From assembly GCF_048593235.1 (NCBI RefSeq), contig NC_133619.1, positions 651,660,558 through 651,724,557 of the forward strand: a stretch of DNA of 64,000 nt. The letters are read 5' to 3'. Each line of letters starts with the position of its first letter. Positions within the stretch are counted from its first letter, which is position 1. The position numbers and the translations under genes were made by a program. This document shows positions 48,609 to 59,903 of the stretch, one piece after another. Below the pieces are notes generated by a model that saw only the letters and a list, made by a program, of their open reading frames with translations, had not been told where the DNA came from and did not search any database. Origin of the DNA: Sminthopsis crassicaudata. Its lineage: Eukaryota.

Positions 48609-49099
48609 GAAGGGGGGATCCAGGTGAAGCTGCTTTCCCAAGCTCCCTCCTCTAGCTTCTGGGGCAGAACTGCCAGACTAAGATTGGGGTGGGGGTCACA
48701 GGGAGGTATGGCCTCGGAGCGGTCTGGTGGGGGTGGGGCAGGGCTGGGATGCACCCACTTCTCCAAATTAACAGCCTTAGTCTCCCCTTGGGGCATCGGC
48801 CTTGGCTGAGAAGAGGAAGGGGGACCCAGACTGGGGGGGCAGAGAACCACAACCTGGGGACACCCAGCCTGCACTGGTCCTAAATTTAGGGCTGGGATGG
48901 CCCCCAGGCCAGGGTGTCCGATGTCTGACACCTAAAAATAGCCGAGGGGGGAAGGGCCGAGAGGAGTCTCTCCCCGCGTTTGGGTGTCTGCCCCCGGCTC
49001 TCACCTGTGTCCGGGACAGCCCTCCCCTCCCCCGCCTGCGCGCCCCCAGGCCCCAGCCTGGCTCCCCAAACTGGCCCCTAATAAACGCTGGTTGACTTG

Positions 49100-50300
49100 A
49101 CCCCGCGGCTCCGAGTGCTGTTTCTGGGCGGGCGGCTCCTAACCCTGCTCTCGCTCTCCCTCGGGCTTTCCCCCCGAGCTTGGGCCCGGGGCTGGGGCCC
49201 GGCCAGGGAAACGGGGCTCCAGTCTCCCCGCTTCTGTCTCCGTCTGGCCCTTATCTTCCCCGGGCGCCTGGCTTGTGTCTCCTCCGGGGCAGGCTGGGAG
49301 TGGGATGGGGGCGCGCTGGCCCGCTGAAATTTCTCTGGCACGGGACACAGGGGAGCCGGGCCGGGCCGCCGGGGTCCAAGGAGGGGGCTGGGGAGGCGGC
49401 GCCTTCCTGGGGGGGGGGGGCGGGGAGGCGCTTAGGCCAGATTCCCGGCCGCCTAGGTGGCCGGTGTGGGCGGACCTGCTGGCCACTCCCCGGTGGGCGG
49501 AGCCAGCCGAGCGCCCGCCCCCTGTCCCGGGAGCGGGCCGCGCCGCGCGGAGCCCGGCGCCAGGGAGCTGCGGCCGCCAGAGCCCCGAGCCCAGGCGGGT
49601 GTCCCAAGTAAGGCCCGGGCCGAATGTCGGGAAGGAGGGCGGGGGCTGGGATCCCGGAGTGCGGGCGGGTCGTGGGTCCGAGGGGGCGGGCCCTGCGGGA
49701 GCTGGGGGTGGGGCCCCGCGGGGAAACTGAGGCAGGAGGCGGCGGGGCCCAGCCCAGCGTCTGGGCAGCTGCGGGGAGTGCCCGGGAGGCCGGAAGGCTC
49801 GGAGCAGCCTCCGCTTTGTTTCTCCATCCCCCTTTTCCGTTAGCCGGCTCGGGCCTGCCCGGGTCCCAGAGGGGGCGTGGGCTGAGTGGGGACGCCTGGG
49901 TCCCGGGGAGAGCCCGCAGCCTCTCCCTCCCTTCCTCCCCGCCTCCCTGCCCGCCCCCGCCCGGGCGGCAGCTCCAGGTATGTGCAACTGAAGTCCTGGG
50001 CGGGTCCCGGCCTGTCCCAAGGCTCCGGGAACATTCCTGGGAGCCGCCTCCCGGACCCAGAGTCCGGCCCCCGCCCCGTGGGGTCCGGGCGTCCGACACC
50101 CCCCCCCCGCCCCCTGGGGCTCGGGCGTCCCTGCCCCCAAGCGACCTGGAGTTCCTTGCGCGCCCCCCTCAGGGCCCCTGGGGTCCGGCGGCTTCCCCCA
50201 GTCTGCGCCCCCCTGGGACCCAGGCTTCCCGGCCCCCAGCCCCCTCCGCTGTCTGGGAGATGGATGGGCCGTGCGGGACATAATCTTTTCCAGCCCTTGA
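49100..50300 (+). promoter_or_regulatory. CpG island, probable NTF4 promoter and 5' non-coding exon(s)
   Basis: Very high GC/CpG; consensus donors CAA|GTAAGG (49607/49608) and CAG|GTATGT (~49977); the coding-exon acceptor is at 50743. Confidence 0.55.
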
Positions 50301-50755
50301 GCCTCATCCATCAGCCGCCGCCCCTCCCCGACATCTGCTTCCCATCCCCGGCAGGTTCCAGTCACCTGGAAGGGGCCTGCGCACAAGACCCGGTCTGGGG
50401 GAGGGGATGCCTGGGTCCTTGGGGAGGACACGAGGGAGACGCGCTCTGAAACGTCCCTCCTTTTTTGTTCCCAAGCGGTCCCGGGATGGCCGGGAGGAGG
50501 GGGCCCCCGGAGACCCTGAGAAGGGACCCTCAGAGCCCTTGGGCCGCCAGCCCCGGGTCCAGGAGGAAGTGGCCCTGAGAAGTCTGGTGAGCCCCGGATC
50601 TTCCCCTCCCGCTCTCTCTCCCCCTTTCCCTGGGTGCTCCTCCCGGGGGATGAGAGGGGGCTTAGCCATCCGAGTCCAAGGGCTTCCCCTTGCAGAGGGG
50701 GGAGTCGGGGGGCTGCCTCTCTGACCAGTGCCCTCTCTTCCAGGTGGCCACAGAG

Positions 50756-51370
50756 ATGCTTCTCCCCTCCCTCGCGCCGCGCGGCTGGCTCTCCCTCTCT
50801 CTTCTCTGGGGGCTACTCCGCGTGGCCCCCCAGGAGCTACCACCGCTGCCCCCGTTCCCGAGCCCCGAGTGGGACCTGCTGTCCCCACGTGTGGCCCTGT
50901 CTCGGGGGGCCCCCTCCGGGCCCCCGCTCCTCTTTGTCCTGGAAGCCTCCCCGGCGGCGGCCCCCGCCAACCGGAGCCGGCGGGAGGCCGGCGTGGGCGC
51001 GGGGGCCGGCCGTCGGGGCGAGCTGGCCGTGTGTGACGCCGTCAGCGGCTGGGTGACCGACCGTCGCACGGCCGTGGACCTCCGAGGCCGCGAGGTGGAG
51101 GTCCTGGGGGAGGTGCCCGCAGCAGGGGGGGGGCCCCTGCGGCAGTACTTTTTTGAGACCCGATGCAAAGCGGCCGGGGGCCCTGAAGGCGGGGCCGGCT
51201 GCCGTGGGGTGGACCGGAGACACTGGGTGTCCGAATGTAAAGCCAAGCAATCTTATGTTCGGGCGCTGACCGCAGACGGGCAAGGGCGGGTGGGCTGGAG
51301 GTGGATCCGCATCGACACGGCCTGTGTGTGCACCCTGCTCAGCCGGGCCACGGCGGGGGGGCGGGCCTGA
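50756..51370 (+). CDS. NTF4: Prepro-neurotrophin-4, 204 aa, single coding exon
   Basis: Acceptor ttccag|gtggccacagagATG; signal peptide; [10 protein letters not shown] pro-region; NRSRR furin site; mature [13 protein letters not shown]...RIDTACVC with six Cys. Confidence 0.98.
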
Positions 51371-52645
51371 TCCCAAAGTGGCCCCCTGCGTGGCCAACCC
51401 CCCCCCCCCCCACAGGCTGCATCTCTTCCTTGCAAACGGAGCTCTCCTCCTGCCCATGGTCCTGCCAGGGCGCTCCAAGCTCACAGCCGAGAACTTGCTT
51501 TCCTTCCAAATGAGAGCTCACGGTCCCACTTGGCACACCGAACGCAGGGGAGCCTTGGAAGGGGAAGGGACTTATGCAAGGGCACCCTGCTCGATCTGGG
51601 AAGTGGCCACCCGGTGAAACTGAGGCATCCGGGCCGCAGCCACCATCTGTGGGCAAGTTCTGGGCACAGCACTCAGAGGAGACAGAGACCCAGAGATCAC
51701 CTCCCACACCAGGGAGGAAGCAGGACAGAGTGGGGCTGATGGTCAGCACTCCCGCCAGGAACCCTGATGTTTGGAGAGGGAGTGAGCCCCCTGCCCAGGG
51801 AAGTGTTCAAGCATCAGCAGAGCAGAGGGAATGTGAACTGGACAATCTTTAAACTCCCCTTCTTTGTGAGGGTCTGAGTGGAGGAGCAGCTCTGACCAGG
51901 CCAGTGGGAGCTGGGCAGATCCTAGACAGGGGATGGAACATCCCGAGGTTTATGGGGCGGAGGAATCAAAGAAGACTGGTGCTGAAAGCCCTCCTAGCTT
52001 CCTTCAGTTTAAGGGGCAGTGGCGGCTGCCTGCTTTGGGTCCACTAGGACCATGAGGCCTCCAGTGGGTCATATCCCCATAACCTGCAGAGCTGAGGAAG
52101 GGTGACAGAAGCTCAGACTCTGGCTCCCGGATTTCTCAGGGCTTCCTGCTTATCTGGCTCCCCAGAGTCCATCTCTGGAACTTTCCCCAAGATTTTGGGG
52201 GGTTGTCCCCAATATTCTCCAGACACGCCCATCTCTTTCTCTGTTTATGTATATGAATAGACACACGTTTCTACACTGTCTTTCTGGCCCTCAGTTCTCT
52301 GGGCCTCGGGGTGTCCGGCGGCTGGTGCTCGGCTCTCTCCGGGTCTGCCTTGCCAGCCCGCTGTCTCTGGGCCCGCCCCTCTCCTGCCCTTCCCCCTCGC
52401 CCCAAGACCTTTTCCACTCTCCCTTGGTGCTGGCCCAGGTGGGTTTTCCCTCCGTGGCTCCCTACTGCTCTGCCCTCCTCCGCCCATCCTTTAGCTGGAC
52501 TCTTTCTGAACTCCTCTCCCGCTTCACCCTCCCCCCACCCTCGGCCTCGGCCCGGCCCCATTGGCCGAGTCCAGGCTCGGGCAGGTTCTGTCTCCAGAGC
52601 GACGGCACAACAGTGGAGAGGGGGAGGCTCCCGGGAGGCTGGGCC

Positions 52646-54407
52646 ATGGCGGGCCTCGCTCGGGCTTCTTACAGCGGCCTCTGGGGCACCCCGGCGGAGC
52701 GTCCTGGAGGTCGGGGGCCAGCCGGGTCCGACAGCCCCCTCCCCTTTCCGCGGCCTAAAGCACAGGTGAGCGGCCGCCGGGGGATCCGGCCCTGGCTAAG
52801 GGGGAAAGGAGGACCCCTCCCCTAAGGGGCGGGGCTGGGGAGAAAGAGACCTGGAGGCCCGAGGGGCGGGGCTGGGGAGGGCGCGGGGGTCTTACACCCT
52901 GCCGAAATCCTTCCCCCTCCTCGTGGCCCAGCCCCCGGTCCCCGAGAGCCTTCCTCCAGAGGCCAAGTGTGAGTCCCTTCTCCTGGACCTGGACGAGGGC
53001 TTCAGTCGCTGGGAGACGTCCTCAGGTGCGGCGCACGGCCCCAAGCCTCACGGCGGGGTGTACGCGCAGCCCGGCCACCCGCTCTCATCCAGGGCCAGAA
53101 AGACGCTGGGGATCAAGGAGTTTGGGGAGAAGGTCAGGAGCGGGGGCGAGGGGGACGAGGCGGGCGGGGGAGGGGGCGAAAGGCCGCGGGGACTGCGGGT
53201 CGGGCGGGGGAGGGGGTGAAAGGCCGCAGGGACTCGGGGGTGGGCGGGGGAGGGGCGAAAGGCCGCGGGGACTGGGGGGCGGACGGGGGAGGGGGCGAGA
53301 GGCCGCGGGGACTGGGGGGCGAGGGGGACGAGGCGGGCAGGGGAGGGGGCGAAAGGCCGCGGGGACTGGGGGGCGAGGGGGACGAGGCGGGCAGGGGAGG
53401 GGGCGAAAGGCCGCGGGGACTGCGGGGCAGGCGGGGGAGGGGGTGAAAGGCCGCAGGGACTCGGGGGTGGGCGGGGGAGGGGCGAAAGGCCGCGGGGACT
53501 GGGGGGCGAGGGGGACGAGGCGGGCGGGGGAGGGCGAAAGGCCGCGGGGACTGGGGGGCGGATGGCCCCAGCCTTCCCCTCTGTGCTCAGCTTCAGCTCC
53601 GGCCCCGGCGGTACCCCCTGAGCATGGGGTGCCAGAAAAGCGAGATGCGGGAGAAGTACCCGGGCTGGCCCAACCTGGGCGCCGAGCCCACTCCCGGGCC
53701 AGAGTTCTGGGACCGAGCCCGCCAGGTGAGGCCGGCCGCGGGGGAGGGGGGCGGCCGGGTGAGGGCGCCGAGAGACCCTGGAGGTCACAGCGAGCGCTCC
53801 CTTCCCCCCAGGTCCTGAGCCTCTCCGGGAAGGACCCGGCCCTGGCCGAAAAGCCCTTCTTCCAGCCCTACCTGACCACCACGGCGCGGGACTTCCGCTA
53901 CTACCCGAGGTGAGCCCTGGCCGGGCCCTGGGGTGCCCCCTCCTCGCGCTCCCAGGAGGATTCGGGCGTCCCTTGTTCCTTGGAAGATCCGTGGGCCGCG
54001 CCTCCCCTCCCCCCACCCGGGGAAGGCTGGGCTCCTGCGGGACTCGGGGTCCTGGCCCCCCCTCCCCTTGGCCCGGAGTCCTGACCCGGCTCACCCCGTT
54101 ACTTGGCAGGAAGGAGCTGACCTGCCAGCCCCGGGGTTTCCGCAGCCAGCCCCCGCCGGGGGTGCTCCAGCCCAAGCGGCCCCTCCTCTCTGTGCCCTGC
54201 ACCACGGGCCAGCCCGTCCCGCGCGTCCCGCACCGCGGGGCCCTGTCGCTGACTCGAGAATCGTACAGGCCCTTCCCGCAGTCGCTGCCCCGGGCCCAGC
54301 GCTCCAGCCCTGCGGAGGCTCGGCGCCGCCCGTCCCTGCCCAGCCTGCAGGCCCTCTACCGGACCGAAAGCTCTCGCTACGGCAGCCTCAAGCCAGACTT
54401 CGTCTGA
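52646..54407 (+). CDS. SAXO3: Five-exon gene, 283 aa, SAXO-family (Mn-motif) microtubule inner protein; positional ortholog of SAXO3
   Basis: Exons 52646-52765, 52932-53132, 53591-53725, 53812-53909, 54110-54407 are all GT-AG and in frame (852 nt). Mn-like motifs SEMREKY, YLTTTARDF, SLTRESY, YRTESSRY. It lies directly upstream of LHB on the same strand, as I recall for human SAXO3. The symbol rests on position and motifs; the start codon is uncertain. Confidence 0.75.
53150..53560. repeat. G-rich compound minisatellite in SAXO3-like intron 2
   Basis: Recurring gggcgaaaggccgcggggact and gggggcgagggggacgaggcgggc blocks. Confidence 0.88.
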
Positions 54408-54894
54408 ACCTTCAGCCCGGTGCAGGGGTGAGCCGGCGGCGCCGTGGGGCAGGGGGCGGCGCCCCTCTGGCCACACCCCCGTAGCTGGCCACACCTCCTC
54501 GGGCCCGGGGCCCTGAAGAAACCCACCGCCAAGGTTAGGGCCGGGCCCTGGGGGCCACTAGGAGACGAGGCTTCTGGGAGCTGGCATCCCACCCGTGCAG
54601 GGCCATGCATCTTTCCGGGGGTCCCCAAGGTTGTCCTCCCCCCACGACGACCTTGGGCTGAGTTCTGTAGCTTGCTGGGCTCCTTCCCATCCCACCTGAG
54701 GCTTGGAGCCAAGGCCCAAGCAGGAGCCACACCCCAGGCCCCCCCCCCCCAGGGTCAGACACAGGTCTGCCACCTGCTGTCCCAGCTGTGAGGTGGTGGT
54801 GGCCTTGGACTAGCCCCACCCCCTTCTGCAGCCCAGGGACAGTGGGGGGAACCCTAAAGCCACCTAAGGCCCAGCCCACGTGCCAGCCTCCCAG

Positions 54895-55002
54895 TGACCT
54901 TGGCTGCGCCCACCTCCACCTGCCCAGGGGATTAGTGTCCAGGTTACCCAGGCGAGAGCTAGAGCCGCTGGCCTTGCCGCCCCCACTGCCCGGGCCTATA
55001 AG
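54895..55002 (+). promoter_or_regulatory. LHB proximal promoter: SF-1, Egr-1, Pitx1, SF-1, Egr-1, TATA
   Basis: TGACCTTG 54895-54902; CGCCCACCT 54907-54915; GGATTAG 54929-54935; TGGCCTTG 54969-54976; CGCCCCCAC 54978-54986; TATAAG 54997-55002. Same order as in the eutherian Lhb promoter. Confidence 0.9.
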
Positions 55003-55037
55003 GTGCCAGGGCTCCGGCTGCCGAGGGGCAGCGCAGA

Positions 55038-55697
55038 ATGGAGAGATACCAGGTCAGAGCTCAGGCCCCGGGGAGCCCAGGGGTGGTAGGCGGCCTCCAG
55101 ACCCAGGAAGCCCAAGAGGGAAGTGGGGTAAGGGGTAGGGTCCGGTCGTTGAAGGGGGCTTTGGGGGCTCCCCGCTCCAGAGGCTGAGCTGGACTCTGCA
55201 ACCCCCTCCCCAGGAGCTAACAGTGCTGGTGCTGCTGCTGCTGGAGGGAGTAGGAGCCGGCCCCCTTCGCCCCCTGTGCAGACCCACTAATGCCACGCTG
55301 GCCGCCGAGAGCGATGCCTGCCCCGTGTGCGTCACCTTCACCACCACCATCTGTGCCGGCTACTGCCCCAGCATGGTGAGGCTCGGGGGGAGGGCCGGAG
55401 GGCGGGGGGCCTGGCTGCGGGCAGCCCCCTCACCCAGCCTCCCCGCTGCTCTCCCAGGTGCGGGTCCTGCCGGCAGCTCTGCCCCCTGGCCCTCAGCTGG
55501 TCTGCACCTACAGAGAGCTGAGCTTCTCCTCCATCCGCCTGCCTGGCTGTCCCCCTGGCGTGGACCCCGTCTTCTCCTTCCCCGTGGCCCTGAGCTGCAG
55601 CTGTGGATCCTGCCGCCTGAGCCACTCCGACTGTGGGGGCCCGAGGGCTCGCCCCCACCTCTGCACCCGGCCCCATCTCAGCCTCCGCCTCCTCTAG
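55038..55697 (+). CDS. LHB: Luteinizing hormone beta subunit, 138 aa precursor, 3 exons
   Basis: Exons 55038-55052 (MERYQ), 55214-55375, 55458-55697; CAGYCPSM determinant, 12 Cys, N-A-T sequon; AATAAA at 55764-55769. Confidence 0.98.
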
Positions 55698-55977
55698 GGC
55701 CCAGGCCTGGGGCTGGAGGGTGGCACCTTCCGCTCCTTCCCTTCCCCCAAGCCCCCCAACCCCAATAAAGGTTTTTCATCTCACCCCTGGTGTCCTTGTC
55801 TGCCTGTGCTCCCTACTAGCTCTCTCCCTATCCCCAATACCGCCTCATCCCCCCAAAAAAGTAACCCGACAGAGAGGCAGAAGGCTTCTAGAACGATTTT
55901 ATAGAAAGTTCAAATGTCACAACTCAAGTAGAAAAGCAAAGGGGGCGGAAGGGAATTAGGGCGTCTGTCCAGGAAGC

Positions 55978-59903
<3,926 letters not shown>

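Follow-up and report, generated by a model that had tools for sequence, protein, structure and literature searches.

In typical conjoined genes, also known as transcription-induced chimeras or as read-through transcripts of tandem same-strand genes, the penultimate exon of the first gene is spliced to exon 2 of the second, and the joint transcripts are minor isoforms beside a normal 3' end. Transcripts with additional upstream sequence have been described for LHB, coding for the beta subunit of lutropin (LH), in the rodent testis. The LHb mRNA of rat testis, found in spermatids at steps 2-10, is 2.7 kb long and carries a 5' extension of 1.9 kb (Zhang et al. 1995, cited from PMC11034993), and the same source describes a discrete LHb-positive band of 2.7 kb in a Northern blot of rat testis. 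The authors working on these rodent transcripts still seek a "testis-specific promoter" (PMC5651699). We analysed a window of 64,000 nucleotides (nt) from the marsupial Sminthopsis crassicaudata (assembly GCF_048593235.1, contig NC_133619.1, positions 651,660,558 to 651,724,557 of the forward strand), in which LHB follows a SAXO3-like gene on the same strand; all positions given below are those of the window unless a contig is named. An earlier note on this DNA had proposed that SAXO3 transcripts read through into LHB, share its polyadenylation (poly(A)) site and may account for the long testis transcripts of the rat, which do exist with the sizes cited above. Our analysis indicates that SAXO3 and LHB are most likely a conjoined same-strand pair in male germ cells.

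SAXO3, LHB and the spacer between them

The proteins of both genes were searched exon by exon. The upstream gene exhibits five coding exons, and all its introns are of the GT-AG type:

52646..52765, + strand: SAXO3-like exon 1, ATG at 52646, 40 codons, followed by a donor GT; 67% identity to residues 1-45 of the Antechinus protein P0053
52932..53132, + strand: SAXO3-like exon 2, 67 codons, AG/GT borders; identity of 84% to Antechinus, 71% to wombat and 51% to Bubalus SAXO3
53591..53725, + strand: SAXO3-like exon 3, 45 codons; 87% identity to Antechinus residues 113-157
53812..53909, + strand: SAXO3-like exon 4, 98 nt, ending in phase 2; 84% identity to Antechinus residues 159-189
54110..54407, + strand: coding part of SAXO3-like exon 5, stop TGA at 54405-54407; identity of 78% to Antechinus and 76% to Tasmanian devil XP_031819290

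Four sequences matched exon 5 in a full-library phmmer search. They were XP_031819290 of the Tasmanian devil (76% identity), one protein each of wombat and bilby, the latter named "stabilizer of axonemal microtubules 3-like", and a Logan fragment. A word search with the wombat protein led to 103 relatives, the eutherian ones mostly named SAXO3, with platypus, echidna and squamates included. The exon-by-exon blastp was collinear with the 287-residue Antechinus protein P0053 (67-87% identity) as well as with the proteins of wombat, Dromiciops, the mouse contig and platypus, and it reached the Bubalus SAXO3 with E values of 1e-6 to 1e-19. The C-terminal motif YRTESSRYGSLKP of exon 5 is common to the window and eutherian SAXO3, and the gene lies between NTF4 and LHB on the same strand, the placement conserved for SAXO3. 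As judged from these similarities, the five-exon gene upstream of LHB is the SAXO3 orthologue, and the earlier reading of it as SAXO3-like is borne out. Pfam assigned no family to the SAXO3 exons, with a single sub-threshold match to PIRC1_2, and no record of a Monodelphis SAXO3 was found. SAXO3 is a microtubule inner protein of the doublets of mouse and bovine sperm and of cilia, and its axonemal doublet location is known by cryo-electron microscopy in mouse, bovine and sea urchin (PMC13066092; PMC11834534); this role in sperm doublets fits an expression in spermatids.

Two features of the marsupial gene were seen beside its identification. The SAXO3 of dasyuromorph type is shorter, with 283 residues in the window and 287 in Antechinus, which is 30-40 residues fewer than in wombat, Dromiciops and eutherians, and most of the segment ELADHH...GPSQALIP...GVLDR is missing from it (window exons 3-4 compared with P0002 and P0006). 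Intron 2 consists mostly of a G-rich minisatellite (53159-53562) with a unit of ~40 nt, GGCGGGCGGGGGAGGGGGCGAAAGGCCGCGGGGACTGGGG, and higher-order periods of 148-187 nt.

Downstream of the SAXO3 stop, the spacer and LHB are arranged as follows:

54408..55037, + strand: SAXO3-LHB spacer, 630 nt, predicted proximal 3' untranslated region (3'UTR) of SAXO3, holding the LHB promoter; 85% identity to devil
54516..54521, + strand: AAGAAA, candidate weak end signal of SAXO3; sole variant hexamer in 54408-55037
54895..55003, + strand: LHB proximal promoter, predicted from motif matches to which the names SF1, Egr and Pitx were given
54895-54902, 54906-54914 and 54929-54935, + strand: promoter motifs TGACCTTG, GCGCCCACC and GGATTAG, respectively
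54969-54976, 54978-54986 and 54997-55003, + strand: promoter motifs TGGCCTTG, CGCCCCCAC and TATAAGG, respectively
55038..55052, + strand: coding part of LHB exon 1 (MERYQ), ATG at 55038, donor GT at 55053
55053..55213, + strand: LHB intron 1, 161 nt; read-through RNA is predicted to keep it, by analogy with the mouse contigs L003, L004 and L007 and with the wombat LHB model
55214..55375, + strand: LHB exon 2; Pfam Cys_knot, E = 8.7e-10
55376..55457, + strand: LHB intron 2, 82 nt, removed in the mouse contigs
55458..55697, + strand: coding part of LHB exon 3, stop TAG at 55695-55697; Pfam Cys_knot, E = 9.2e-17
55764..55769, + strand: AATAAA of LHB; no canonical poly(A) signal comes earlier downstream of the SAXO3 stop, or of the NTF4 stop

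The LHB gene of the window contains three exons with GT-AG introns, 12 cysteines and a cystine knot, and it has promoter motifs and a TATA box. The promoter block 54895-55003 is nearly invariant among the dasyuromorph sequences compared and shows an identity of 68% to mouse and 71% to platypus; SF1, Egr and Pitx are known factors of the LHB promoter, and their binding to the predicted sites is putative.

On the + strand, neither AATAAA nor ATTAAA is found from 49085 to 55764. The spacer (54408-55037) was scanned for 16 variant hexamers, of which only AAGAAA is present. The absence of any canonical signal before the LHB TATA box, with AAGAAA as the only weak one, had been claimed in the earlier note and is confirmed by these scans; the positions on which the note relied (the SAXO3 stop, GT 54428-54429, AAGAAA, TATAAGG, 55214, 55458 and AATAAA) are likewise all right. 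By chance, about 0.01-0.02 canonical hexamers are expected per 630 nt at 70% G+C, and the absence is statistically unsurprising; it is meaningful in functional terms, for a gene that needs a 3' end.

We then compared the 3' ends across amniotes, the spacer being measured from the SAXO3 stop to the canonical LHB ATG and the signal being any canonical one before the LHB AATAAA:

This window: spacer 630 nt, no canonical signal
Tasmanian devil: spacer 630 nt, no canonical signal
Antechinus: spacer 652 nt, no canonical signal
Dromiciops: spacer 850 nt, no canonical signal
Platypus: spacer about 600 nt, no canonical signal
Mouse contig: spacer 587 nt, no canonical signal
Lacerta agilis: LHB 6.5 kb away, AATAAA 158 nt after the SAXO3 stop

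The LHB AATAAA is the first canonical signal past the SAXO3 stop in all the mammals checked (6/6), and the two genes are adjacent on the same strand with apparently no efficient terminator between them in the window and in the five other mammals. Devil, wombat, bilby, Antechinus, Dromiciops and platypus all have the gene order NTF4-SAXO3-LHB and a RUVBL2 gene in convergent orientation, and NTF4-SAXO3-LHB also occurs in the lizard (Lacerta). The coupling had been described as ancient. This stands for the amniote-wide gene order. The sharing of the end signal, by contrast, seems to be confined to mammals, since in the lizard SAXO3 is followed by an AATAAA of its own.

Some LHB coding models of non-eutherian mammals extend upstream past the pituitary start site. 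The NCBI model of the devil takes as its start an in-frame ATG that precedes the canonical one by 162 nt and lies beyond the TATA box, and that of the platypus begins 365 nt upstream of the canonical ATG, with its first coding exon within the spacer. The wombat LHB model has a coding sequence (CDS) range of 624 nt for 179 residues, with space for one 84-nt intron only, so that intron 1 is retained in this model. The 5'-extended models hint at RNA across the promoter. The devil LHB exon 2 (L001 8400-8545) shows several frame-breaking indels relative to the window and Antechinus and a donor GG instead of GT. Either the assembly is wrong here or the devil LHB is damaged, and the altered exon may be the reason for the 171-residue upstream-start model at NCBI.

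Read-through RNA in murids and the testis LH-beta transcripts

A mouse-like SAXO3 protein of 323 residues was found as an exact match on two RNA contigs, L003 (3619 nt, DRR816459) and L004 (2331 nt, SRR33152786), and the intron-1-retaining Lhb open reading frame (ORF) of L003 is present on a third contig, L007 (3964 nt, SRR24829795). These contigs are Logan assemblies of three independent RNA runs and agree without gaps at 99.96-99.97%, with one single-nucleotide polymorphism each. L003 carries the fully spliced Saxo3 CDS (58-1029), then the unspliced 587-nt spacer with the Lhb promoter motifs and TATA box, and downstream of it the murid contigs contain Lhb exons 1 to 3, with intron 1 kept and intron 2 spliced out, and AATAAA (L003 2347-2352). 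L004 ends 13 nt past the Lhb AATAAA, and L003 and L007 extend into the antisense 3' end of Ruvbl2, as expected of an unstranded assembly of convergent, abutting transcripts. At its start, L003 exhibits adapter sequence and a run of G like a template-switch 5' end, which suggests that a 5' end was captured. Genomic DNA as the source of the contigs is ruled out, because the Saxo3 introns and Lhb intron 2 are missing from them. RNA with exons of both genes is thus present in murids, and in this RNA the Saxo3 mRNA uses Lhb exons as its 3'UTR. Among the other records retrieved, the Logan contig L002 is genomic, eutherian and uninformative and was set aside, and the proteins P0103 and P0104 look like last-exon ORFs of eutherian genomic sequence.

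Lhb exon 2 begins ~1.87 kb from the start of L003, in agreement with the 1.9 kb extension reported for the rat testis LHb mRNA. The rat-derived forward primer used for "testis LH-beta" (Kim and Lee 2017, PMC5651699) falls within the Saxo3 CDS, at L003 464-483 with 2 mismatches; the reverse primer of that paper has no match on L003 within 3 mismatches, and the 800-bp product and the rat splice boundaries are only roughly placed. For murids, the three RNA contigs and this primer support the earlier proposal that the testis Lhb transcripts are mRNAs of the upstream gene with LHB exons as 3'UTR.

According to the classical view, a separate testis-specific promoter lies upstream of LHB and the long testis transcripts are LHB isoforms unrelated to SAXO3 expression. 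This is the reading given by the rat and mouse papers themselves, in which such a promoter is still sought (PMC5651699; PMC11034993). Yet the upstream part of the murid RNA is a complete, correctly spliced Saxo3 ORF that begins at a probable cap site, and the primer for rat testis LHb cDNA lies inside the Saxo3 CDS, so that the "testis promoter" would simply be the SAXO3 promoter. With both of these facts, we consider the classical view very improbable. No paper linking SAXO3 with LHB was found in our literature search.

Splicing within the long transcripts was also considered, since the earlier note had proposed a donor shortly after the SAXO3 stop:

54428..54433, + strand: candidate 5' splice site GTGAGC, probably unused or unimportant, inside an insertion peculiar to this species

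From this site, a transcript could be spliced from 54427/54428 to LHB exon 2 (55214) or exon 3 (55458), so that neither the LHB promoter nor LHB exon 1 would remain in it. As a donor, GG|GTGAGC is plausible, its intron side being the same as in the true donors of SAXO3 exons 1 and 4, and the platypus LHB model places its first coding exon inside the spacer. The rat testis cDNAs also appear to be spliced within or close to the spacer: by the numbering of PMC5651699 they miss a segment that reaches from inside the Saxo3 CDS to roughly 0.1 kb beyond the stop, and contig L005, from another murid, ends exactly at an acceptor-like CTCCAG 92 nt past the Saxo3 stop. The rat testis clones may thus be alternatively spliced forms. 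However, the insertion that carries the 54428 donor is not in devil, Antechinus or Dromiciops, and the spacer contains two GTRAG motifs against 0.68 expected, a count of at least two being reached in 15% of shuffles, so that the donor is no more than chance would give. Moreover, the three mouse contigs pass through the spacer unspliced and keep Lhb intron 1. The specific junctions 54427-to-55214 and 54427-to-55458 that had been predicted are therefore unlikely, and this spliced form appears quite improbable.

The retained intron 1 has a consequence in the mouse sequence. An ATG at the end of the intron opens an ORF of 139 residues (L003 1868-2287, MSQGLLLW...) that keeps the LHB signal peptide and the mature chain. 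Although the entire Saxo3 ORF precedes it, this reading frame could give rise to the LH-like immunoreactivity reported in spermatids. No equivalent ATG is present near the end of LHB intron 1 in the window.

The 3' end of SAXO3 in the marsupial and its neighbourhood

For this marsupial, our analysis makes a simple read-through of SAXO3 to the LHB poly(A) signal rather probable. In spermatids, transcription would start at the SAXO3 promoter without termination in the spacer, and the polymerase would pass a silent LHB promoter, with the 630-nt spacer kept unspliced. The stretch from the acceptor of SAXO3 exon 5 to the donor of LHB exon 1 measures 943 nt, which is probably too long for definition as an internal exon. 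Long internal exons are poorly defined under the general rules of exon definition, and by these rules intron 1 would stay in. LHB intron 2 (82 nt) would be removed, and cleavage would take place after the AATAAA at 55764. The predicted product is a SAXO3 mRNA of ~2.2 kb with a 3'UTR of ~1.3 kb made of spacer and LHB sequence. An exon junction lying beyond 50-55 nt after the stop marks an mRNA for nonsense-mediated decay; the removal of intron 2 would leave a junction ~970 nt past the SAXO3 stop and, by this rule, a predicted mark. The donor at 54428 would be unnecessary for such a read-through, and LHB probes or reads in testis would report SAXO3 mRNA.

SAXO3 could instead end mainly just past AAGAAA (54516-54521), with read-through as a minor and inconsequential by-product. 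AAGAAA is the sole variant hexamer of the spacer and is kept inside GAAGAAACCCACC in the window, devil and Antechinus; NTF4, too, must end without a canonical signal, and the contigs do not give the shares of isoforms. Against such an end, the hexamer is lost at the homologous site of Dromiciops and no AAGAAA is found in the mouse and platypus spacers. Its flanks are no better conserved than the remaining spacer (85% identical), and the sequence downstream is G-rich rather than GU-rich. All the mouse contigs that pass the Saxo3 stop run to the Lhb signal (3/3), and the discrete 2.7 kb band of the rat testis Northern blot (PMC11034993) points in the same direction. We consider an early end at AAGAAA unlikely.

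Several points nevertheless weigh against read-through to LHB in this marsupial. Spermatid mRNAs often have non-canonical poly(A) signals, and an early 3' end at AAGAAA 54516, kept in the window, devil and Antechinus, may fit this use. The absence of AATAAA is weak evidence in a G+C-rich region, NTF4 being likewise without a canonical signal before 55764. De Bruijn contigs represent continuity of coverage, rather than single molecules spanning the path or the share of read-through in SAXO3 mRNA, and the murid runs DRR816459, SRR33152786 and SRR24829795 carry no tissue assignment. A query of the protein collection with Antechinus SAXO3 gave no marsupial RNA-derived SAXO3, and read-through RNA was seen in murids only. 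Finally, the annotation software may itself have created the LHB models with extended 5' ends.

A broader form of the read-through proposal would hold that the SAXO3 terminator was lost in all mammals, that the LHB poly(A) site is the obligate 3' end of SAXO3 and that most of the 30-year literature on "testicular LH-beta" mRNA concerns SAXO3. We regard this as possible but doubtful. If true, the pituitary LHB promoter and the LHB exons would be constrained in their evolution a second time, by serving as 3'UTR for a sperm-tail gene, and the SAXO3 mRNA, through the removal of intron 2, would be inherently subject to nonsense-mediated decay or to 3'UTR surveillance in spermatids.

The stretch around SAXO3 and LHB is gene-dense, with a G+C content of 68-70%, and the two genes have the following neighbours:

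about 50757-51371, + strand: NTF4 coding sequence, from reading and translation of the window
55898..55980, - strand: 3' end of RUVBL2, convergent with LHB; stop (reverse complement of TCA) at 55978-55980, TATAAA-type hexamer at 55898-55903

RUVBL2 is the tail-to-tail neighbour of LHB at all mammalian loci retrieved. The gap between the LHB cleavage site and the convergent RUVBL2 3' end is ~100 nt (window 55785-55900), and the mouse RNA contigs join the Lhb and Ruvbl2 3' ends. Between NTF4 and the SAXO3 start, the only hexamers found were TTTAAA (51848) and AATAGA (52256), neither of them canonical. Downstream of the AATAAA at 49080, one canonical signal is available on the + strand to NTF4, SAXO3 and LHB together. 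A koala protein of 654 residues (P0005, NCBI, named KCNA7) contains the N-terminal part of KCNA7, a piece of the coding exon of NTF4 and the SAXO3 sequence starting with exon 2; its NTF4 part is cut after ...DLRGRE, where the window has a GT (~51095). This protein represents either a three-gene read-through or a modelling artefact. Rfam gave no match in the window between 51000 and 57000. The window (54447-54465) and mouse L003 (1204-1222) have a G+C-rich box in common, whose reading as a possible CTCF-like site was rejected (E = 0.07, little resemblance to the CTCF motif).

SAXO3 recorded as LHB, and comparison with known systems

The two genes are also confused in databases. The "lutropin subunit beta isoform X1" of Sigmodon (NCBI, 328 residues) and the UniRef "Lutropin subunit beta" entries of pig, Colobus and aye-aye are SAXO3 homologues, and one model of 493 residues fuses SAXO3 with a Cys_knot domain. 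Names of this kind arise where transcript models have exons in common between two genes. The confusion reaches measured expression in a yak study (PMC7022877), in which "LHB" was quantified with quantitative PCR (qPCR) primers from XM_019980229.1 and the signal was highest in testis and moderate in lung. These primers translate to QCSETK and PSQALI, which correspond to residues 134-176 of bovid SAXO3, and 43 codons plus 2 bases give the reported amplicon of 131 bp. The testis and lung pattern suits an axonemal gene. The warning of the earlier note that read-through would confound extrapituitary LHB calls is borne out by this case, with primers inside the SAXO3 CDS.

Read-through pairs as a kind are already known, the rodent transcripts have been known since 1995, and merged models are implicit in the databases. 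What is new is the identification of the 5' part as SAXO3 and the apparently mammal-wide lack of a SAXO3 terminator, which we extend to a marsupial. The puzzle of 1995 would find a simple explanation, since the long "LH-beta" mRNAs of spermatids would be SAXO3 mRNAs. LHB signals in testis, whether RNA-seq counts, qPCR or in situ probes, can come from the SAXO3 3'UTR or even, as the yak study shows in a concrete case, from the SAXO3 CDS; this affects claims of local LH production as well as the annotation, in which SAXO3 proteins are named lutropin. A downstream promoter inside the 3'UTR of the upstream gene, an arrangement that apparently predates the split of monotremes and therians, would provide a natural setting in which to test transcriptional interference and the decay that 3'UTR introns trigger. 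In a wider version of the doubtful broader reading given above, if true, the whole KCNA7-NTF4-SAXO3-LHB array, with its single canonical signal after 49085 in the window, would form one read-through unit in some tissues.

Three known systems can be set beside the locus. The database models that record SAXO3 as LHB (Sigmodon, pig, Colobus, aye-aye and XM_019980229.1) imply transcripts with shared exons in several eutherian orders; they are automatic and uninterpreted, and the marsupial and platypus genes are filed separately. The testis-type LH-beta of rodents (Zhang et al. 1995, cited from PMC11034993; PMC5651699) resembles the arrangement described here in having LHB exons behind ~1.9 kb of extra 5' sequence, and the murid contigs have the same layout. 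In those papers, the transcripts are treated as LHB isoforms with a testis promoter and an LH-like protein, whereas here the 5' part is a full SAXO3 coding mRNA. In the marsupial window, the arrangement of the genes in the DNA predicts a 5' extension of about the same length. With conjoined genes, SAXO3 and LHB share the adjacent position on the same strand and, in the mouse, a transcript that runs from the upstream promoter to the downstream poly(A) site. Unlike typical conjoined genes, the pair keeps the full upstream ORF with its stop, the spacer stays unspliced in the mouse transcript, and SAXO3 appears to have no canonical 3' end of its own in the mammals checked.

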